The position numbers and the translations under genes were made by a program. This document shows positions 2,941 to 58,583 of a stretch of 64,000 nt of DNA, in pieces. The notes beneath the pieces are model-generated. The model did no database searches. It saw only the letters and a list, made by a program, of their open reading frames with translations, and was not told where the DNA came from. The stretch lies in the sequence record NC_028829.1. One strand, written 5' to 3'. Position 1 is the first letter of the stretch. Each line of letters begins with the position of its first letter.

Positions 2941-3861
2941 TTAAGATTCCATTATTTCTGGGTTTAACCACGGCGCATCGAATGCATTCACATATTTGGT
3001 AAACGCTGCATCGTCGGTGTATATTTTTAGACTTGTTTGACTAGTCAAGACGATATAGAAGTTCTTGAATGCACCAACCAGATATGTTCTATCTTCTTCA
3101 GGACCCTCACCATAGTCGAAAATTGGGTGCTGTAGTGCTGCTAACCATCCCTCTCGGTCAGACATTTCATACACAACGCGATTTACACGTAACCTAGCTG
3201 CAATTTCGTCAGCCGCTTTTACAACTGCACGACCTTGCCCTAGAACACCACTAATCATCGAACCATCTTCAACTTCAAACGCTCTTACAAATGCATATGC
3301 ATTGGCGTGAGATAAATTAACTTCAACATGGTCGCTATGTTCTTCAAACCCGACTGGACGACGTGCTCGACGTGAAAAGTCATCTACACGTTGTTGATAA
3401 CCCACATCATACACAATGAATTCACGACCTACGTTTCTGTAATCATACTGAGGGAATTCTCTAAGTTTCGCCTTTGTCATGATCTTATACAGTCTGAGAC
3501 GTTTATCTGCATCACGCTGATCAGCGTCATTGAACGCGCTATATGTTATTTGAGCAGGTGAATTGTCTCTAACAAAACTGAAAATCGCATCGACAACCGT
3601 TGATAATACGACTCGTGCTGTTTTATCATCTTTCTTAGTTAGATTATAACCACTACCATCAAGAGCTTTGAACGACACATCAGCCTTCATAGACTTCATC
3701 CCGTTCGGTTCACGTATAATGCCTTTCTGAATGTCTATTTCATAATAAACACCATCAACTTGAAACTCATACACGTTTAAATTTGGTAACTCACGGACGA
3801 GATTATATTTCGCTGGTCGATCTAACGACTCGTTGAGTCTTTGATATTCGCTAAATTTCAT
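2941..3861 (-). CDS. Putative capsid-internal protein, shared-domain family, paralog 2
   Basis: MKFSEYQRLNE leader; shared domain; C-terminal GQGRAVVKAADEIAARL resembles GNAT motif A. Confidence 0.65.
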   Translation of the reverse strand: MKFSEYQRLNESLDRPAKYNLVRELPNLNVYEFQVDGVYYEIDIQKGIIREPNGMKSMKADVSFKALDGSGYNLTKKDDKTARVVLSTVVDAIFSFVRDNSPAQITYSAFNDADQRDADKRLRLYKIMTKAKLREFPQYDYRNVGREFIVYDVGYQQRVDDFSRRARRPVGFEEHSDHVEVNLSHANAYAFVRAFEVEDGSMISGVLGQGRAVVKAADEIAARLRVNRVVYEMSDREGWLAALQHPIFDYGEGPEEDRTYLVGAFKNFYIVLTSQTSLKIYTDDAAFTKYVNAFDAPWLNPEIMES

Positions 3862-50445: not shown

Positions 50446-51196
50446 CTTCAAGAATATTCAAATTATATTTCGGCTTCATGTAATGACTCATGTTTGCACA
50501 AATGAAATCACATGCCCAATTCTTAGTAAGCCGTGTAATTGTCTTCTTCAACGCATGATTCCACGCATTCAACGGCATCATTCCGTGAACAATGTATCGT
50601 TCAATTGCGATTACCGAAATTTCTTCGTGGAATAAATTGATCTTGTCTTCGAACGACAATTGTTCGAACTTCTCTTTACTGACTAAAACATCACAGCCGT
50701 CTTTGAGAATTTTCTCATACAACGGGCGGTTAGGTGCTGCGACCATTCGATGAAGCTCATCATGTTCATACACGTATCGAACTTTGTCATTAAAGAAGTC
50801 GTCTGCGTCTTTGTTCAAACACAGATAATCTTTATTGCCAAGCTCTTTTCGCCAGTGATTCGTCAACGCCGCGTATAGCTCAGGCTTGATTTTGCAGAAT
50901 CGCGATAAAGCAATAACATCACGCTTATGCTTGTCCCACAACGTCGAACCACCAAACTGACTATACCCGACTTTATGTTCATCCCAACCAAGATGGCTGC
51001 ACTTAATCGTATATATTTCATCAGCAGTTGCTATATCACCGTCGAACATCTGCAATATCTCGACGGGCATGACAATGAAATCATCCCCGTCGTTAGCCGA
51101 GTCGGGAGAGTCTACGAATACATCTAGGTCTTTAATGGTATTACGCAGTCGAATACCATTATGATGCAACGCAGTTGACCCGACAACAATACGCAT
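50435..51196 (-). CDS. Putative Pol-beta-like nucleotidyltransferase-fold protein
   Basis: VVGSTAL...KDLDVFV; HDELH. Confidence 0.5.
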   Translation of the reverse strand: MRIVVGSTALHHNGIRLRNTIKDLDVFVDSPDSANDGDDFIVMPVEILQMFDGDIATADEIYTIKCSHLGWDEHKVGYSQFGGSTLWDKHKRDVIALSRFCKIKPELYAALTNHWRKELGNKDYLCLNKDADDFFNDKVRYVYEHDELHRMVAAPNRPLYEKILKDGCDVLVSKEKFEQLSFEDKINLFHEEISVIAIERYIVHGMMPLNAWNHALKKTITRLTKNWACDFICANMSHYMKPKYNLNILEEKG

Positions 51197-51198
51197 TA

Positions 51199-51492
51199 CT
51201 AAGGAGTGCTCGTGAATTGAGTTATCGTAACTTGCTTTGGGTATACTTCAACGAAGTGATCCCCGTAGTTATCGTAACCGTGGTAGCTGTAGTAGCTGTA
51301 TTCAGTCTTGAAATAGCGATCAGCTTTCTTCAAGATAGTGTAACAGTACTCAGAGCCGCCTTCACCCCCACCATCTTGTTCAACGAACTCGACACCCGGG
51401 TATTCACCATCACCGTCTAACAGAAAGTCAAGATAATCCGTATCGTCGTAGTCTTCACCAAGAATTTCTTCAAATGTATAACGATTTGTCAT
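51199..51492 (-). CDS. Acidic hypothetical protein
   Basis: D/E/Y-rich, GGGEGGSEY. Confidence 0.6.
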   Translation of the reverse strand: MTNRYTFEEILGEDYDDTDYLDFLLDGDGEYPGVEFVEQDGGGEGGSEYCYTILKKADRYFKTEYSYYSYHGYDNYGDHFVEVYPKQVTITQFTSTP

Positions 51493-51813
51493 TTATTTCA
51501 CCATTTTTTCAGTTTTTGCTTTGTGTTCGTTTTCTTTTCGCTCCCATTTGGCGAGCTTGTTTCGAACAACGTTCATGATTTCTGCTTCAGTGATGTTCGG
51601 GTTATCAACGTAAATCAGATCAACAAGACACAAAATCCCGTCTACTGCTTCACCTAGAATGCCGTCAACGTCAGCGTTTTTGTACGACGTACCGTACTTG
51701 ACGCGAACTTCAGTTGCTAGTTCGCCTACTTCTTCAACAACGCTCATGTGAACGTCTTTTACTGTTCGACCGTTGTCGATTCGCTTACTTGAAGCTAGAA
51801 TTTCATTGATCAT
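51493..51813 (-). CDS. MazG-like nucleotide pyrophosphohydrolase
   Basis: EEVGELA...GEAVD. Confidence 0.85.
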   Translation of the reverse strand: MINEILASSKRIDNGRTVKDVHMSVVEEVGELATEVRVKYGTSYKNADVDGILGEAVDGILCLVDLIYVDNPNITEAEIMNVVRNKLAKWERKENEHKAKTEKMVK

Positions 51814-52502
51814 AGAGTATTCAACACATCAACAATTTGAATTTTTTCAACAGTGTGAAATCCATATTCACAGTAAGGCATTTGTTCAGAAATGAACTGA
51901 ATATCATCTTCACTGAACTCAGGGTATACTTCTGAGTTCGGACGCTCTTGACATTCGCCTTCTGTCCAACTCGCCAGAGAATCACCAGAAAGATGTACGA
52001 GCGTTTCAAATCGCTCAACTTCTTCACTCGATGCCGGTTTCAAATCGCCAACGTAATCACCATCATTGGTGTCAACTTCTACGTAAATATGTAACGCCAT
52101 TACAAATTCCTCATTATTGTGCCTATTAAAGCGAAAACAATCGCCGAGATGATCAATACAACCCACCCAGCGACTGTATGACCCGAAATGATGAGCCATG
52201 CACCGAAGATAAGCCCGCCAACTGACAATCCGAGAATAACCAACATTGCGACGATACCGAACGCAATCAATGTCAACAACCCCGTTACGAACTCACCTAA
52301 GTTCATGTTACTCACCAATTTCAAAGTCAAAAAGATAGTGAATCTTGCCGTCAGTTAGCGAATCGCCGATGAGCGGGTCGTTAGCTGCAACAACTTTGCT
52401 GTACGGAAGTTTGATAAGCTCACCGTCGATTGTGTCAATTCGCTCAATTACAATGATTGGCGTACCTGTTTTCAGTTCAAAATAATCTGTTTTACTAATC
52501 AC
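51810..52502 (-). other. Three small ORFs (52308..52502, 52100..52306 membrane, 51810..52100 acidic)
   Basis: Coupled ORFs. Confidence 0.55.
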
Positions 52503-53401
52503 GACATTTTACCTTTTAGGGTTGGGTATGGGTCATAGTCATATACGCGAAAATCACTTGCGCGTTTAGTTAACAACTGTGACAACGTTTCAAATTCAGG
52601 AAGTTCAATCTGAGGTAGCGCACGCGGCGTACGTCTCATTTGCTTCATTACTTGTATTAGATGATCTTCATAAATGTGAACATCACCACCAGAGAAAATC
52701 AATTCACCGACACCTAAGCCAGTCAATCTAGCTAGTATATGCACTAGCAAAGCATACGATGCGATATTGAACGGTAGACCTAAGAATGTGTCAACTGAAC
52801 GCTGATTCCATTTCAAGCTGATCTTACCATTACGCACGAACACTTGAAAGCCGTAATGACATGGCGGTAGAGCTACGTCAACTGAGTTACTTTCAGTATG
52901 GAAGTACGGGTCCCATGCTTCAACAAGCATACGACGTTGCGCACTTTGCGTCGGGTCTTCATTAACCGCTGCAATATCGCACAGCAATTGATGAATCTGG
53001 TCAAACTCAACAATTTCTCGCTCTGCATTTACAGATAGACGTTTACGCCACACTTTGCCATAGACATAACCAAGGTCGTCTTCATTGCGAACAATACCTG
53101 CTTCTTTCGCACGCTCGTTCAGCTCGTCGAGATTTTGTTGCCAGATACAGAAATCTTCGTCTGATAATTCAGTGTATTTTCTCAGTTCAGAAATCGAACC
53201 TGAACCGCTCAAGAACCATAGCAACTCACCGAAAATAGCTCTTGTCGCCATTTTCTTAGTCGTTAGCAACGGGAAACCTTTTTCTAAGTCCCATCGAAGC
53301 TCACGCGAAACAACACTAACAGTATTCGTGCCTGTTCTATTCTCAAGAAAATCACCATTTTCTAGAATATCTTTACAAAGTTCCAAGTAGTTTTTCATCA
53401 A
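52499..53401 (-). CDS. td: Thymidylate synthase, intronless
   Basis: RTGT, LPPCH, QRSVDTFLGLPFNIASY, DVHIYEDH. Confidence 0.98.
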   Translation of the reverse strand: MMKNYLELCKDILENGDFLENRTGTNTVSVVSRELRWDLEKGFPLLTTKKMATRAIFGELLWFLSGSGSISELRKYTELSDEDFCIWQQNLDELNERAKEAGIVRNEDDLGYVYGKVWRKRLSVNAEREIVEFDQIHQLLCDIAAVNEDPTQSAQRRMLVEAWDPYFHTESNSVDVALPPCHYGFQVFVRNGKISLKWNQRSVDTFLGLPFNIASYALLVHILARLTGLGVGELIFSGGDVHIYEDHLIQVMKQMRRTPRALPQIELPEFETLSQLLTKRASDFRVYDYDPYPTLKGKMS

Positions 53402-53407
53402 TTACCT

Positions 53408-53611
53408 TTAAAAATCATCGTCCCATACTGCTTGCACGGGAGTACATTGCATCAACTGACCGTCAATTTCATAAGTCTCTGATTGCGGTTGAGTACTGTA
53501 AGATGTAGGTTGTTCAGCCTCAAACAACGTACCAGCAGCTACCGACGCTAGAATCCCTAGAATCGCAATCAAAACAATCAATTCGATCAGAGTAAAACCT
53601 TTAGATTTCAT
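53408..53611 (-). CDS. Prepilin-type N-terminal cleavage/methylation peptide
   Basis: MKSKG-FTLIELIVLIAILGILA class III signal. Confidence 0.8.
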   Translation of the reverse strand: MKSKGFTLIELIVLIAILGILASVAAGTLFEAEQPTSYSTQPQSETYEIDGQLMQCTPVQAVWDDDF

Positions 53612-53647
53612 AATATTACACTCACAAAGTTAGTTAATAAACAGTTT

Positions 53648-53878
53648 TTACGGCAGTTTGCTCGTTTTGCGTGCTTGCTTTGCCGTTTCAGGTAGTTTCA
53701 CTTCAAAGTGCTCTGCTTGTGAAACGTACAATACGCGCTCTGCAAGTAATTCACCGTTCTCGTAAACAGTCGTAATGAATTCAGGACCAGAAGAGCTATT
53801 TTTAACATCAACACCTGGTTTTGTCATTAGCTCTTCAAAGCGAGTCGCAGTAGTCAATTTAAGATTTAAGTTATCCAT
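53648..53878 (-). CDS. Hypothetical protein
   Basis: ORF overlapping the upstream stop. Confidence 0.55.
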   Translation of the reverse strand: MDNLNLKLTTATRFEELMTKPGVDVKNSSSGPEFITTVYENGELLAERVLYVSQAEHFEVKLPETAKQARKTSKLP

Positions 53879-54317
53879 GATGAGAATGAAACCCCTCTAA
53901 GTATTTTGCAAGTTCATATGTTCGACCGTATTTGTAGAACATATCTGAATCAAAGTCGCGACGCTTTAGACCTTCGCCGATCTTACGCAGTTCACGCCAT
54001 TCTTTCATTTCTGCTTGAACTTGCATTAGCGTGTCGTCGCCAATGAATGCTACACCTGTTAGTGAGTGATGTAAACCTTCTTCTTGAAAAAATGTAATGT
54101 CTTCAACAACACCCATTTCACGAATTGTCTCTTCGATTTCTTCAAGATGGTCATGACTAGCCGCTGACAGAATAACGATTGTTTCGTCTTCGTTCAACCA
54201 CTTGTCAAAGATCGGCTTTTCTGCTTTACGCGCAAGACGTAGCAGCGCATGTGCGCCTTGAATACCAGCTTGAATGCCTTTACAATAGCGATTCACGAAA
54301 ATATATGCTTTACTCAT
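53871..54317 (-). CDS. Peptidyl-tRNA hydrolase 2-like protein
   Basis: GIQAGIQGAHAL...W....ETIVIL...F.E.....LTGVAF. Confidence 0.55.
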   Translation of the reverse strand: MSKAYIFVNRYCKGIQAGIQGAHALLRLARKAEKPIFDKWLNEDETIVILSAASHDHLEEIEETIREMGVVEDITFFQEEGLHHSLTGVAFIGDDTLMQVQAEMKEWRELRKIGEGLKRRDFDSDMFYKYGRTYELAKYLEGFHSHHG

Positions 54318-54368
54318 TAAAAATTCCAAAATTATTCAAAAATTACACTAAAACATGACCTTTCATAT

Positions 54369-54376
54369 TATAAATA
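54369..54376 (+). promoter_or_regulatory. Consensus late promoter for the endonuclease
   Basis: TATAAATA then an AGGAG RBS. Confidence 0.85.
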
Positions 54377-54393
54377 AAATAAAAGGAGATTGC

Positions 54394-55044
54394 ATGTTTC
54401 ACATCATATACAAAATTACAAACGAAATCAACAAAAAAATTTACGTCGGTAAGCATAGCACACACAACATTGACGACTCTTACATGGGCTCTGGAGTTGC
54501 GCTGCAACGAGCATTCGACAAGTATGGTATAGAGAACTTCACAAAGGAAATTATTCACGTGTGCGATACTTGCGAAGATGCATTGATACTCGAATCAGAG
54601 ATCGTCGATCTCGATTTCGTCAATCGCAAAGACACATATAACCTAGTTGTTGGCGGTCTAAGCGGCTCAACCGGTACCATAGTCAGCGAAGAAACTCGCC
54701 AAAAACAGTCGGCGGCAAAGAAAGGTCGCAAGCTAACTCAAGAACACAAAGACAAAATTGCCGATTCATTGCGTGGTAAACCTAGTCGTGCAGCCGGTTC
54801 GGTCAAAAGCGAAGAGGCTAAACGAAAAACGTCGGAAGCATTAAAGGGTCGAACTTCACCGATGAAAGGCAAAACTCACTCAGAAGATACCAGACAGGCA
54901 TTATCTGAATTGAATAAAGGTCGACCAAAGCCCGTTGTTACATGCCCACATTGTGGCAAATCGGGCGGCGCTTCAGCAATGAAACGTTGGCATTTTGATA
55001 ATTGCAAACTTAAAGATCACAAATCTTTTCCTCACAATACATAA
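54394..55044 (+). mobile_element. Free-standing Seg-type GIY-YIG homing endonuclease with NUMOD3 repeats
   Basis: IIYKITN...IYVGKH...YMGSG; SEETRQKQS, SEEAKRKTS and HSEDTRQALS repeats; CPHC tail; inverted orientation. Confidence 0.9.
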
Positions 55045-55264
55045 AGCCATGAGCGTTTCTAGTTAATTCACTCACAACTGTGCCATTAATCATGTCGATG
55101 TTCACAGTGTTCAATTGAACTTCATTACCTGCGTCATCAACAAGTCGTAGAAAATCACCACGTGCCCATAGACACGGTGCAATATCAACCAACTGACCAA
55201 AAAAGCTCTCTTGGTCTAGTCTTTCAGTGACCTCGATATAGTCACCAAGTCTAATTTGCTTCAT
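55010..55264 (-). CDS. Hypothetical protein
   Basis: 3' end overlaps the endonuclease convergently. Confidence 0.55.
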   Translation of the reverse strand: MKQIRLGDYIEVTERLDQESFFGQLVDIAPCLWARGDFLRLVDDAGNEVQLNTVNIDMINGTVVSELTRNAHGFMYCEEKICDL

Positions 55265-55649
55265 TTTGCTTTCTGCTTATATCAATCAAAAAGAATTTAT
55301 CATGGTTTTGCTTATTTTCATTACGATATATCGTCGTAATCAAAATACAACCTTTAATTCCCTTCTCAAATATTATGTAAATATCTTCACGCTTGATAGC
55401 AAGCTCACGCTTTTCAGCACTGTAATACCAATACAGAACTTCACCTAAGTGCTTGTTTACTGTATGATACAGCATTCTACGCAATGTTGAATGTTCAGCA
55501 GCACAGAATCGGTCATATACTCGATGTGTGAAGTGTTTCTTCATAACAAAGTCAACAGTCCCGACTAAGCCACGCTGCTTCTCAATCGCGTAATTGTTGA
55601 ATTCAAATGAAAATCTTTTCCATTTGTACATGAACGAATGCAAATTCAT
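55251..55649 (-). CDS. Hypothetical protein, possible RelE/RegB-like RNase fold
   Basis: HFTHRVYDR and ILITTIY motifs. Confidence 0.35.
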   Translation of the reverse strand: MNLHSFMYKWKRFSFEFNNYAIEKQRGLVGTVDFVMKKHFTHRVYDRFCAAEHSTLRRMLYHTVNKHLGEVLYWYYSAEKRELAIKREDIYIIFEKGIKGCILITTIYRNENKQNHDKFFLIDISRKQNEAN

Positions 55650-56010
55650 AACGTTTTTTCAAACTCATTGATTTGCGAATTAAGCTCTTCGCGAGTACGA
55701 GCAACTAAAACAGTACCGTCTTTGTATGTCGCGATGAACTGAGCTTTCTTTTCGATTGTCCAATCTAAGCGATTCGTTGTCATAATATTGTTCTCTTTTC
55801 GTTGTCGATGTGAGTATATTACACAAGTCACATCGACAACGCAACCACTTTTTACATATTTTCTGTAATTCTGAAAATATTAATCAGTGGGTATTTGTAA
55901 ACCATACCGTCTTTCATCATCAAGCAGTAAAGACCGTCTTTGGTGTAAGCGTTCTTTACATTATCATGAACAACTGGCTTGGCTTGTGATAGTAAATGTA
56001 CAGCAATCAT
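55646..56010 (-). other. Small ORFs 55852..56010 (52 aa, not in the ORF track) and 55646..55783; early promoter at 55816..55844
   Basis: MIAVHLLSQAKPVVHDNVKNAYTKDGLYC...; TTGCGT-17 bp-TAATAT. Confidence 0.55.
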
Positions 56011-56702
56011 CATAGTAGCCCAAGTTCCTCTTTCTCTTCGTCAGTGAAATCAACCGATACTTCATGACATTCCATTTTCTCGGGTAGTTCTTCTAAATCA
56101 AGTGCGTAACGCGCTGCCATGATAAGCATCATTGCATCTTTCGCACAGTCGTGTACGCCGTTGTGGTGAATGAAACCTGGCATTGCGTCACGACGAATTG
56201 GCACTTTACACATGTCACGTTGTAACATCAATGCTTCAATACGAGTACGAACATCACGGAATTTCCAGAATCGTTCGATGACTGCATGACGCAAGCCGCT
56301 GTACTTGAAGCAATCTGCCATTAACGGGATATCGTAGTTATTACCGCGACAGTACAAGTGTGAACGACCGTCGTAGCGAGTGTTTTCTTCGATCCACTCA
56401 ATGAACAACTTGTGACCTTCTTCAACCGACACGTCTTCTGCGCTAGGTATTAGAATTTCTTTCGCTTCTTTTGATTGCTCAGACCACCATTGCACAGTAG
56501 CTTTGTTAATGCTTCGCTTACCTTTCTGAGTTTTGATCTCAAACTTGCAACGAAAAGAGTTTTTCACAAGCTCTTGGTAGTCAGGGACTTTCGTAAAATC
56601 GTGCTCGAATTCAACTGCACCTAGTTCAATAACCGCAGCGTCAGGGGTCACGTCGAACCCCTCATAGTCAATCAGTATGTCGTAAATGGGTTTATCATTC
56701 AT
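56010..56702 (-). CDS. dexA: DexA-like 3'-5' exonuclease
   Basis: DYEGFD, WWSEQ, RGNNYDIP, FRDVRT, HNGVHDCAKD. Confidence 0.9.
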   Translation of the reverse strand: MNDKPIYDILIDYEGFDVTPDAAVIELGAVEFEHDFTKVPDYQELVKNSFRCKFEIKTQKGKRSINKATVQWWSEQSKEAKEILIPSAEDVSVEEGHKLFIEWIEENTRYDGRSHLYCRGNNYDIPLMADCFKYSGLRHAVIERFWKFRDVRTRIEALMLQRDMCKVPIRRDAMPGFIHHNGVHDCAKDAMMLIMAARYALDLEELPEKMECHEVSVDFTDEEKEELGLL

Positions 56703-56941
56703 GATATTTCTCTCTTCACATTTAGTAAATCATGCAGCAATTCAAGCTTGCTTTCGATTTTGTGTTGTTGATCTTGAATCTGACCAAGAGTCGCTTTACG
56801 AGCATTGATCATCTTCTCTTTTTCTTCTTGATCGCGTGCAACATCGAGACGAAGCGCACTTTCTACGCGCTCGTCTGTCAGAATTATACGCATTGAATTT
56901 AGAATACGGTCAGTATCCAACAAATCATCTTCATTTGACAT
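56699..56941 (-). CDS. Hypothetical coiled-coil protein
   Basis: Coupled ORF. Confidence 0.55.
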   Translation of the reverse strand: MSNEDDLLDTDRILNSMRIILTDERVESALRLDVARDQEEKEKMINARKATLGQIQDQQHKIESKLELLHDLLNVKREIS

Positions 56942-57540
56942 TATTTCACCCCGCTACCGCCAAACCCACGAGCACCGCGGTCAGTTTTTTTGTCAAAAGT
57001 ATCAACTTCTTCAAACTGCACGTTTTTCACGTAAGTATGGAAAATCAATTGACAGATACGATCACCGCGCTCAATATGCAGCACATCGTCGCCTTCGTTG
57101 CGAATCTTGATCATGATTTCGCCTTGATAGTTCGCGTCGATAATCCCGATTGTGTTTGCTAGACGCAAGAAGTGCTTGAACCCAAGACCACTGCGCGGTG
57201 CAATCGCGCCGTATACACCAATCTCATCAGCATAATGAGGAAATCCAAACGAGTTTTTATGTGCGAAATAACGCATAATACGTCGAAATGCTTCAAATGT
57301 ATTGCTCAAATTCACATTATTTTGATGAATCGAGTGAGAACCAATATGAATCTTGACACCAGACGGGATAACGACTGAATCACCCGGTTGTAGCTCGATT
57401 GACTCTTCAATTGCAGCACGCAGATCAATACCCGCGTCATCTGGGTCTTTCACACCAATTGGCTCAATTGCTTTTAGACCAAGTTCTTTGTTTTCTTTGT
57501 AGTGAGGCAGGTAAATAATCTTCATTAAATTTTCTTCCAT
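56941..57540 (-). CDS. dut: Trimeric dUTPase with an internal insertion
   Basis: AGIDL, PRSGLG, GIIDANYQGEI, RICQL, RGARGFGGSG. Confidence 0.95.
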   Translation of the reverse strand: MEENLMKIIYLPHYKENKELGLKAIEPIGVKDPDDAGIDLRAAIEESIELQPGDSVVIPSGVKIHIGSHSIHQNNVNLSNTFEAFRRIMRYFAHKNSFGFPHYADEIGVYGAIAPRSGLGFKHFLRLANTIGIIDANYQGEIMIKIRNEGDDVLHIERGDRICQLIFHTYVKNVQFEEVDTFDKKTDRGARGFGGSGVK

Positions 57541-58583
57541 CTGTTAAGTCGATTTGTAGCCATTAGACCGCTAACGGCATTTTCATAAATGTATTGCTGA
57601 ATGAACTCAGCAGACACACCAGCTTTGACAAAATCATTGATGTCTTTCTTATCAATAATTTGAGGTGGGAGCTTATCCCAAATAACAACACGCTCACCTG
57701 CTCTGATTAGAACTTGAAGACGCTTTACAACGTCTGGGTGCCGAGGCTCATTATCAAGCGCCCAAATGCGATTCCCCGCATAAGGTGCATTTTGTGGACT
57801 GACTTGTCCACCTACTATAGCACAGCAATTGTAGAGGAATAAACTATCAATCGGGCCCTCAACGAAAATAACAGGGTCATCTTCATTGATACGCTCTGTG
57901 CCGTATATCTTGTTGAAATCGTCGTCAATTTTAATGGTCATGTATCGTTGAGCATGTTTGTTTGTCAACGCACGACCTTGAACAGCAATCAAACCTTCTT
58001 TGTTATAGATAGGTATTACCAATCGAGGGTGGTCATTTCTAATCTCACCTTCGTACAAATCTGGGCGAAGCGTCTTAGCCATTTGAGACCAGCCACGAGT
58101 AAACCCAAGCAAATGCCACTTGTCTTTAGGGATTTTTCTAGATTCGAGGTATTTGTGCATCACATGACCATCTTTAAGGGCAGTGATATTATAGAAAAGT
58201 TGCTCTTCTTGTTCTTTCTCAACGACAGTCGCTTCTTTCTTTTCAACGACTGGTTCAGGTTCGCGTTCTTTACGCTCACGAGAATTGCGCTCTTTGAATA
58301 ACTCGACGCGATACTGAGAAAACAACGATGGTTCGTGATCTTTCAAAAAAGTATACAGAGATTCGTTATAGTCACAGTTCCAGCAACTACAACGTAAATG
58401 AATCTCACCAGAACGTGTCTTAACTTCATTAATCCAGAAACGTGTCTTGTACTTGTTCTTTTTCGAGTCACCACAAATCGGGCATCTTGCATTGATTTTG
58501 AATGGACGATGACTATGCACCGTAGGGAGTAGTAATCGATGCTGAAGCATCTTGGCGTATTGTATATCAATCAATATTTGCAT
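57525..58583 (-). CDS. 61: DNA primase gp61
   Basis: CPICGDS...CWNC zinc finger, EGPIDSLF, DNEPR, KDIND; promoter GTTTAT-17 bp-TATAAT near 58605..58633. Confidence 0.97.
   Translation of the reverse strand: MQILIDIQYAKMLQHRLLLPTVHSHRPFKINARCPICGDSKKNKYKTRFWINEVKTRSGEIHLRCSCWNCDYNESLYTFLKDHEPSLFSQYRVELFKERNSRERKEREPEPVVEKKEATVVEKEQEEQLFYNITALKDGHVMHKYLESRKIPKDKWHLLGFTRGWSQMAKTLRPDLYEGEIRNDHPRLVIPIYNKEGLIAVQGRALTNKHAQRYMTIKIDDDFNKIYGTERINEDDPVIFVEGPIDSLFLYNCCAIVGGQVSPQNAPYAGNRIWALDNEPRHPDVVKRLQVLIRAGERVVIWDKLPPQIIDKKDINDFVKAGVSAEFIQQYIYENAVSGLMATNRLNRWKKI

Follow-up and report, generated by a model that had tools for sequence, protein, structure and literature searches.

Why does a virulent vibriophage keep, next to its thymidylate synthase gene, a very short gene whose product starts like a type IV prepilin and carries no pilin head? 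The question is raised by ORF231, an open reading frame (ORF) of 67 codons in a 64,000-nucleotide stretch of the record NC_028829.1 (the window; window coordinates equal record coordinates minus 62000). Over bases 52000-55000, the window matches Vibrio phage ValKK3 (NC_028829 / KP671755) with 100% identity; ValKK3 is a 248-kb T4-type myovirus of the genus Schizotequatrovirus that was isolated on Vibrio alginolyticus and belongs, with the KVP40 group, to the Straboviridae, which bears out the phage origin and the Vibrio host assumed in a first, sequence-only reading of the window. ValKK3 was described as virulent, no lysogeny gene having been found (PMC13142089). The sequence-only reading had taken ORF231 for a prepilin mimic that may act either as a dominant-negative pilin or as a decoy for the prepilin peptidase PilD. 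The answer favored here, at a probability of roughly 0.45, is that ORF231 is a headless prepilin mimic that is made early in infection, processed by the host and docked at the assembly sites of type IV pili or of the type II secretion system (T2SS). In more general terms, the sequence evidence suggests that ORF231 most likely lets the phage tamper with the pilus or secretion machines of its host.

The prepilin signal and the tail behind it

ORF231 begins with a basic leader of five residues, the last of them Gly-1. Past the predicted cleavage site come Phe+1 and Glu+5 and, directly after the latter, 20 residues without charge, Asn or Gln. These are the features that the sequence-only reading had pointed out (basic leader, cleavage before Phe, Glu at +5, a hydrophobic helix of 20 residues); they can be read in the sequence as described, and AlphaFold2 places a helix over residues 8-30. 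The claimed class III signal on a 67-residue ORF likewise holds up, as the ATG-initiated product scores above the cut-offs of both Pfam N_methyl (PF07963; 30.4 bits vs. 21.2) and NCBIfam TIGR02532 (26.7 bits vs. 16.3, with 23.5 and 37.4 bits for orthologues). The bare motif would be weak evidence, because the six-residue cleavage-site motif arises by chance 0.43 times per shuffled window. ORF231 is the only ORF of the window that contains it, and the whole KVP40 genome has a single N-terminal occurrence. With all sequence criteria present, ORF231 belongs, as judged from its sequence, to the proteins with a class III (type IV prepilin-like) signal. It is not of the Flp/Tad (type IVc) kind: its cleavage region is of the Gly/Phe-Thr-Leu-Ile-Glu kind, and a Pfam scan at E <= 1 gave no Flp match, its only results being N_methyl and DUF4330, the latter below threshold. 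PHROG assigns ORF231 to a family of its own, phrog_13280, of unknown function, and holds two further short families with the same N-terminus (profile lengths 59 and 72); across Pfam, NCBIfam and PHROG there was no match beyond prepilin-type families.

Removal of the leader would leave a mature form of 62 residues. AlphaFold2 runs on alignments of three and of eight sequences gave the same picture each time, namely a helix over residues 8-29/30, a low-confidence linker and a single beta hairpin (strands 45-49 and 52-56), at a mean predicted local distance difference test (pLDDT) score of about 66. The sequence matches in the PDB, mostly over the helix (Geobacter PilA-N, MshA, PilA, GspG), all stop by residue 47. 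Both results agree with the earlier statement that the protein has no pilin globular head. The same reading had seen nothing behind the helix except a short acidic tail. Acidic it is, with eight acidic and no basic residues among 37, but a conserved hairpin under strong purifying selection had been overlooked. The eight members of the family alignment have 44-76% identity to ORF231, and the columns without variation are M1, K4, G5, F6, T7, L8, E10, G19, G51, C56 and T57; the cleavage site, Glu+5, Gly+14, the Gly of the hairpin turn and the Cys-Thr pair are thus fixed in 8/8 members. The conservation of the C-terminal hairpin implies a specific periplasmic partner for ORF231.

ORF231 is not a structural pilin or pseudopilin, because each feature expected of one fails. 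An alpha1-C segment and a beta-sheet globular head are absent from its 62 mature residues, which hold one helix, the linker and the hairpin; C56 is the sole Cys, so that the two-Cys disulfide region of type IVa pilins is missing; the best score among the named equivalog models (GspG, GspH, GspI, GspJ, PilA, ComGC and others) is 27.3 bits, against cut-offs of 44-400; and the flanks hold a 76-residue hypothetical gene and the thymidylate synthase gene td, not pilus or T2SS assembly genes.

The gene is a real one under purifying selection, in which the signal with its helix and the hairpin are constrained and the linker evolves freely. Pairwise Nei-Gojobori estimates of the ratio of nonsynonymous to synonymous substitution rates (dN/dS) for the gene as a whole range from 0.06 to 0.26, apart from a single outlier of 0.44 (nt-1 vs. 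6E35.1a), and its synonymous sites are close to saturation. Within Schizotequatrovirus/Mylasvirus pairs, the ratio is 0.05-0.13 for the signal and helix, 0.2-1.1 for the relaxed linker (residues 29-45) and about 0-0.12 for the C-terminal motif (residues 46-59). The ORF is intact in each relative read, across at least three genera and several metagenomic lineages, and its GC content (0.412) is close to that of the phage (0.409).

A tblastn search of the phage collection, whose low-complexity filter probably masks the N-terminus of ORF231, found orthologues in 46 records, all of them Vibrio phages, 28 of which cover at least 80% of the query. A HMMER search of 1.84 billion representative proteins returned 15,591 with the N-terminal domain at E <= 0.001, and among the matches inspected only six 50%-identity clusters had the tail too: P0002, P0007, P0008, P0011, P0035 and the more distant P0032. 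The context is td-linked in P0008, P0011 and P0035 (the contig of P0011 is short and its downstream gene unannotated), the P0007 sequence is identical to that of the 6E35.1a gene, itself directly upstream of thyA, and P0032 stands just upstream of a T7-type RNA polymerase gene. The full-length family was absent from 185,579 bacterial and archaeal species, each represented by one genome, where only pilins with the common N-terminus were found; a tblastn search of plasmids gave no match, the N-terminus probably being masked there as low complexity. A recent capture from a host was therefore rejected, the composition being equal to that of the phage and no bacterial genome holding the full-length family.

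Processing of the signal was considered in KVP40, the family member checked over its whole genome for a prepilin peptidase. The KVP40 record has no prepilin peptidase annotated, and a hydropathy scan of all KVP40 ORFs of at least 40 residues (244,834 bases) found a single protein with at least four hydrophobic windows, the nicotinamide mononucleotide transporter PnuC. Because KVP40 lacks a candidate for the enzyme, processing would depend on the host, and any cleavage and methylation of ORF231 would have to come from host PilD (VcpD). Pilin assembly requires removal of the leader. Methylation is not needed for it (PMC13170266).

Proposed interference with pilus assembly and its rivals

In the favored reading, ORF231 would enter the inner membrane with a cytoplasmic N-terminus, and host PilD (VcpD) would cut the five-residue leader and methylate Phe+1. 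The mature form would then act as a pilin stem whose Glu+5 and alpha1-N helix compete with host pilins, either at the assembly platform or at the base of the growing filament of PilD-dependent machines, i.e., pili of the mannose-sensitive hemagglutinin (MSHA) type or other type IVa pili and possibly the T2SS pseudopilus. Because the stem is headless and lacks the normal subunit contacts, it would perturb or cap assembly, and the hairpin would supply a specific contact in the periplasm. The likely benefit would be takeover of the host surface or superinfection exclusion of pilus-dependent competitors, analogous to the effect of other pilus-silencing phage proteins.

What argues for an action at the assembly interface is Glu+5. 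Gly-1 is the key residue for prepilin cleavage, and Glu+5 serves the assembly of pilins, not their processing. As Glu+5 is invariant in the family and needed for assembly rather than cleavage, engagement of an assembly interface is favored over a decoy for PilD or a plain membrane anchor, in which an invariant buried Glu would not be expected. In the competence-pilus machine of Vibrio cholerae, minor and major pilins may compete for access, a possibility raised by the authors of that work, and T2SS minor pilins expressed ectopically promote assembly of the competence pilus (PMC13249403). The sequence-only interpretation thus keeps its core, a genuine and conserved class III signal on a headless protein of a lytic vibriophage; of its two branches, the invariant Glu+5 favors the dominant-negative pilin, and the pure PilD decoy has lost ground.

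Several points weigh against the proposed interference with assembly. The receptor of KVP40 is OmpK, not pili (PMC13609209), and since KVP40 adsorbs to OmpK, self-exclusion would not be explained. The benefit of blocking pili within a short lytic cycle is conjectural, and literature searches found no functional, expression or processing data for the ORF231 family and no transcriptome of a KVP40-like phage. The pLDDT of the hairpin is moderate, at about 60-70. At position 22, ORF231 has a Gly where the matched PDB pilins have the P of an AIP/AAP stretch, so that its helix may not act as a true alpha1. Nor does the sequence tell which machine would be the target: GspG/GspH, PilA and MshA match only the N-terminus and with similar scores, the NCBIfam models likewise cover the N-terminus only (13-37 bits), and true MshA-type pilins behave alike in these models, T2SS and type IV pili not being separable by them. 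A likeness to host pilins does speak for the favored reading: the closest N-termini in Vibrionaceae, those of Photobacterium pilins that have the identical five-residue leader and 20-21 of 30 N-terminal residues identical, are MshA-type, scoring 79.8 bits against 9lab_B, the MSHA major pilin (residues 2-99). However, the scan behind this resemblance was seeded with the leader, which biases the result and makes it a weak pointer to an MSHA-type origin or target of ORF231.

The hairpin lends itself to another explanation, unlikely on balance and still to be reckoned with, in which the signal serves for delivery and anchoring only and the hairpin binds an envelope target other than the pilus (such as a cell-wall enzyme, a sensor of envelope stress or a component that serves DNA entry), resulting in exclusion of the Imm/Sp kind or in conditioning of the envelope. 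The hairpin is as constrained as the signal, with dN/dS of about 0-0.12 and G51, C56 and T57 invariant, which a mere headless filler would not need, and it sits on a flexible, fast-evolving tether. The annotation of KVP40 lists no homologues of imm, sp or rI, a role that a small early envelope protein could fill, and the mini-prepilins of other, jumbo phages lie among small membrane proteins and Band_7 genes with no pilus-related gene near. An anchored ligand would nevertheless have no need of an invariant Gly-1, Phe+1 and Glu+5, a charged Glu within a membrane helix is costly unless used, and the tail has no family or structure match that would suggest a target.

It is improbable that ORF231 is only a decoy, i.e., an abundant competing substrate or inhibitor of PilD that lowers the maturation of all host pilins and pseudopilins and enters no filament. 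The perfect conservation of the cleavage-site residues and the reliance of the phage on the host enzyme are consistent with such a role, and in Pseudomonas delayed prepilin processing alone gives resistance to a pilus-specific phage (PMC13170266). Only Gly-1 is critical for cleavage, however, and a decoy would leave both the invariant Glu+5 and the distal hairpin unexplained. As a substrate that is turned over it would be required in large excess, whereas the ribosome-binding region of ORF231 looks weak.

The chances are slimmer still that the sensors of the host pilin pool respond to stem protein gathered in the inner membrane and then turn pilin gene expression off. A precedent exists in Pseudomonas, where a build-up of unprocessed pilin inhibits PilSR and suppresses expression of new prepilin (PMC13170266), and ORF231 retains exactly the conserved N-terminal stem of pilins. 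Nothing in the present analysis, on the other hand, gives evidence of a PilSR-type circuit over MSHA or other Vibrio pili; a transcriptional shut-off would be slow relative to the lytic cycle and redundant with the general host shut-off of T4-type phages; and the conserved hairpin would again be left unexplained. That ORF231 has no function at all, whether as a spurious ORF or as what is left of a host pilin gene once captured and now decaying, is scarcely credible: it is very short, lacks a pilin head and resembles pilins at its N-terminus only, but it is intact and syntenic in the relatives read, its dN/dS lies well below 1 at synonymous sites near saturation, its composition has converged on that of the phage, and its tail motif is conserved and not found in bacterial genomes. 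A further reading as a lysis regulator (RI-like) was set aside, as there are no lysis genes near, the site is a true class III site and not a generic signal anchor, and the gene is fixed next to td.

The locus and other phage mini-prepilins

The features of ORF231 and its surroundings are collected in Table 1.

Table 1. Features of the mini-prepilin gene, its neighbors and similar genes in viral contigs (window coordinates unless a contig is named)
Feature	Position	Strand	Basis and remarks
Mini-prepilin gene ORF231, YP_009201334, orthologue of KVP40.0030	53408..53611	-	ORF list, record annotation; 67 codons + stop, ATG start
Basic leader, residues 1-5, ending in Gly-1; predicted prepilin peptidase site after residue 5	53597..53611	-	Sequence; M1, K4, G5 invariant 8/8
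Alpha1-N-like hydrophobic helix, residues 6-30, with Phe+1/Glu+5/Gly+14	53522..53596	-	AlphaFold2 helix; mean pLDDT up to 91 in one 10-residue block
Variable Ser/Thr/Gln/Pro-rich linker, residues 31-44	53480..53521	-	AlphaFold2 mean pLDDT ~50 (residues 31-40), sub-50 segments in both models
Conserved C-terminal beta-hairpin, residues 45-58, single Cys	53438..53479	-	AlphaFold2 strands in both runs, pLDDT 59-71
Acidic C-terminal end, residues 59-67	53411..53437	-	Lineage-dependent; absent in nt-1, CZ01, QD01, P0008, P0035, P0032
td (thymidylate synthase)	52499..53398	-	PF00303 E 4e-79, annotation; start 9 nt past mini-prepilin stop
Intergenic leader, 36 nt	53612..53647	-	Strongly conserved among ValKK3, KVP40, nt-1, QD01
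76-residue hypothetical gene ORF232, phrog_14360	53648..53878	-	Synteny in all relatives; always immediately upstream
PTH2-like hydrolase ORF233, first of conserved three-gene run	53871..54317	-	PF01981 27.9 bits, phrog_3668, annotation
Two-Cys mini-prepilins	L013-L016 (about 3001-3195), L112, L169, L168, L105		Viral-contig sample

Bases 52000-55000 of the window are 98-99% identical to phages XZ1, R10Z, VH7D and phi-ST2 and about 84% identical to KVP40. The order PTH2-like hydrolase, hypothetical gene of 75-77 residues, mini-prepilin and thymidylate synthase is found in ValKK3, KVP40, phi-pp2, phi-Grn1 and PG216, and it holds as well in QD01, in the 6E35.1a/D484 clade, in nt-1 and CZ01 (Mylasvirus) and in three metagenomic lineages. 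The mini-prepilin lies directly upstream of td in every KVP40-like lineage examined, and no gene is broken at this locus in ValKK3 and the relatives compared. The block is surrounded by dut, dexA, primase, Sir2 and topoisomerase genes, i.e., by the replication and nucleotide region of a T4-type genome. Given td, dut, dexA and primase as neighbors, with td so close downstream, the mini-prepilin would probably be co-expressed early or middle with the replication and nucleotide genes.

The upstream hypothetical gene has phrog_14360 as its sole family match in Pfam and PHROG searches, and its KVP40 orthologue shows fewer than four hydrophobic windows in the hydropathy scan. In two metagenomic relatives (L020 1909-2139, L022 3789-4016), it overlaps the start of the mini-prepilin; together with the constant pairing of the two genes, this overlap suggests translational coupling and possibly a common function. 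The intergenic leader is nearly unchanged between phages whose synonymous sites within the ORF are near saturation; the 6E35.1a clade, with its closer gene spacing, lacks it. Its role could be that of an operator, of a signal for translation or of an internal promoter for td. A sigma-70-like match at this leader, overlapping the start codon, is no better than chance and was not accepted as a promoter. A scan of bases 51000-57600 found 19 promoter-like sites vs. 15.3 expected, and because these numbers are near chance, no promoter was called. A terminator-like hairpin of eight pairs followed by a T run lies within the last codons of the ORF, before td (53421-53441, minus strand); with nine such sites in 6.6 kb vs. 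5.3 expected, it may be due to chance.

Just beyond the PTH2-like hydrolase, on the opposite strand, stands a GIY-YIG homing endonuclease gene (54355-55044, plus strand). Similarity to XZ1, R10Z, VH7D, phi-ST2 and others, as well as to KVP40, stops at query base 2301 (window 54300), and because the relatives lose similarity exactly there, the gene looks like an insertion specific to ValKK3. In a metagenomic relative (L022 4222-6099), the thymidylate synthase gene is in two pieces with an I-TevI-like GIY-YIG endonuclease gene between them, an arrangement that recalls the td intron of T4.

Mini-prepilins also recur in other phages. In a sample made up of viral contigs matching the back-translation of residues 4-11 of ORF231, at least 69 complete ORFs have the motif near their N-terminus, and at least 25 of these are shorter than 80 residues. 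One recurrent family, with two Cys and 64-75 residues, is carried by viral contigs whose lengths range from roughly 10 to 258 kb and several of which are of jumbo-phage size (224-258 kb). On contig L013, the neighbors of the two-Cys mini-prepilin are two small ORFs of strong hydrophobicity and a 270-residue ORF, whose counterpart on contig L017 is a Band_7 protein; on the latter contig an unrelated mini-prepilin of 58 residues (P0005; 6001-6177) directly follows the Band_7 gene. Searches of the PDB and BFVD with Foldseek returned nothing at E <= 0.001. The best structural neighbor in BFVD is the nt-1 orthologue (E 0.1), and the second is Q56ER6 (Aeromonas phage 31 ORF097c), a protein of 72 residues at 30% identity whose E value of 0.38 is not significant. 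As a lead and not a result, Q56ER6 may be a mini-prepilin of another T4-type lineage. A much broader proposal, for now a doubtful one, would see in mini-prepilins of at most 80 residues, made up of a class III signal and a short tail with Cys, a broad and overlooked class of early proteins of large lytic phages, which would have several origins, be processed by host PilD and use lineage-specific tails to plug or re-purpose a periplasmic component common to all PilD-dependent machines, thus shutting down pili, competence and type II secretion together. The td-linked Vibrio family and the two-Cys jumbo-phage family beside Band_7 genes would be instances of this class.

MSHA and related pili govern the attachment of Vibrio, its competence and its susceptibility to other phages. 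Given these roles, a phage gene acting on such pili would shape competition between phages and the behavior of the infected host, in the sea and in aquaculture, where KVP40-like phages are candidates for phage therapy. If ORF231 is indeed processed by PilD and interferes with a pilus or the T2SS, it would be a minimal natural probe (a stem and a 14-residue hairpin) of pilin selection and docking at the assembly platform, and the first case of surface takeover by a pilin mimic in a T4-type marine phage.

Comparison with known systems

Among pilins of solved structure, the closest by sequence are the Geobacter PilA-N pilins (Geopilin domain 1; PDB 2m7g, 7tgg, 9egp), which are the best PDB matches of the family profile at up to 50 bits, have a class III N-terminus and, in the 61-residue chain of 2m7g, nearly the length predicted for mature ORF231. 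However, the match is confined to residues 3-47, the helix of ORF231 ends near residue 30 and gives way to the low-confidence linker and the hairpin, and, whereas PilA-N is nearly all one long continuous alpha1 helix and has an adjacent PilA-C partner gene, ORF231 adjoins only td and the 76-residue hypothetical gene. ORF231 is therefore not a Geobacter-type PilA-N, its helix being too short and a partner gene missing. The MSHA major pilin MshA (PDB 9lab) is likewise among the best PDB matches of the family profile, but pilins of this type have 160-190 residues with a globular domain, and the phage protein has only the leader and alpha1-N in common with them. The T2SS pseudopilins GspG/GspH (EpsG/EpsH in Vibrio) are the top NCBIfam equivalogs, at 27 bits, and the ValKK3 record carries a PulG note; these scores are far under the cut-offs (80-89 bits) and cover residues 3-36 only, and ORF231 has no pseudopilin globular domain.

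With Imm and Sp of T4, ORF231 would have in common that they are small early envelope proteins of a T4-type phage, which is a possible functional analogy only, as the topology signals differ and ORF231 matches prepilin-type families only. The KVP40 record has no homologue of imm, sp, rI or t annotated by name. The same record notes a gp5 without lysozyme domain, and KVP40.0338 (PF04186 match) and KVP40.0339 (TIGR01933 match), both within L027 44538-45827, lie beside the baseplate genes. We take PF04186 to be an FxsA-like family and TIGR01933 an HflK/Band_7-like one.

Similar in the proposed effect are the small phage proteins that silence pili, among which Tip and Aqs1 inhibit type IV pili by acting on PilB. 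To our knowledge, none of PfsE, Tip and Aqs1 has a prepilin signal, their action being directly on platform or motor proteins, and no sequence relation was found between these three and ORF231. PfsE, a small membrane protein of phage Pf4, blocks pili through PilC and resembles the role proposed here as a short phage protein that turns pili off and excludes pilus-dependent phages (PMC8764522).

The pilin likeness and the idea of pilus blocking are not new: the former has been annotated since the KVP40 record, and truncated phage pilins were discussed in 2026. ORF231 is annotated as a hypothetical protein beside the PulG note, a PF00114 match was noted for KVP40.0030 in the 2003 record, the KVP40 and nt-1 proteins carry the source name "prepilin-type N-terminal cleavage/methylation", and those of 6E35.1a and QD01 are annotated as PilE-like. 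The ValKK3 paper mentions a pilin match, and the ORF was flagged there in a screen of virulence and toxin databases (PMC13142089); the present analysis shows that what was flagged is a headless stem and not a functional adhesin or toxin. New here are the evidence of selection and the conserved hairpin, together with the findings that KVP40 lacks a candidate peptidase, that the gene keeps its place next to td, that bacterial genomes do not carry the full-length family and that mini-prepilins recur in phages.

The nearest precedent is provided by the pilin mimics of other phages. These comprise P-FimU, P-PilA and a truncated P-PilA group; the FimU mimics of prophages (P-FimU) become part of the pilus and keep tip-binding phages out, and for the truncated PilA-like proteins, about 60 residues long and encoded by virulent Pseudomonas phages, a role as pilus blockers was proposed (Sztanko et al., Cell Rep 2026, PMC12952977). 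Unlike ORF231, P-FimU is, as described there, a prophage-encoded minor pilin of full size that has a head and whose incorporation into the pilus was shown (PMC12952977). The truncated P-PilA group, as described, is like ORF231 in being a phage gene with a pilin N-terminus and about 60 residues in non-temperate phages, and the proposal made for it, that it enters the pilus without offering a binding site or else blocks assembly, is the very idea of the sequence-only reading (PMC12952977). By this comparison of descriptions, the Vibrio family is set apart by a single-Cys hairpin of its own and by its fixed place upstream of td. ORF231 thus fits, when grouped by description under the criteria of that paper (PMC12952977), the loose kind of phage-encoded pilin mimic, and within it the truncated sort.

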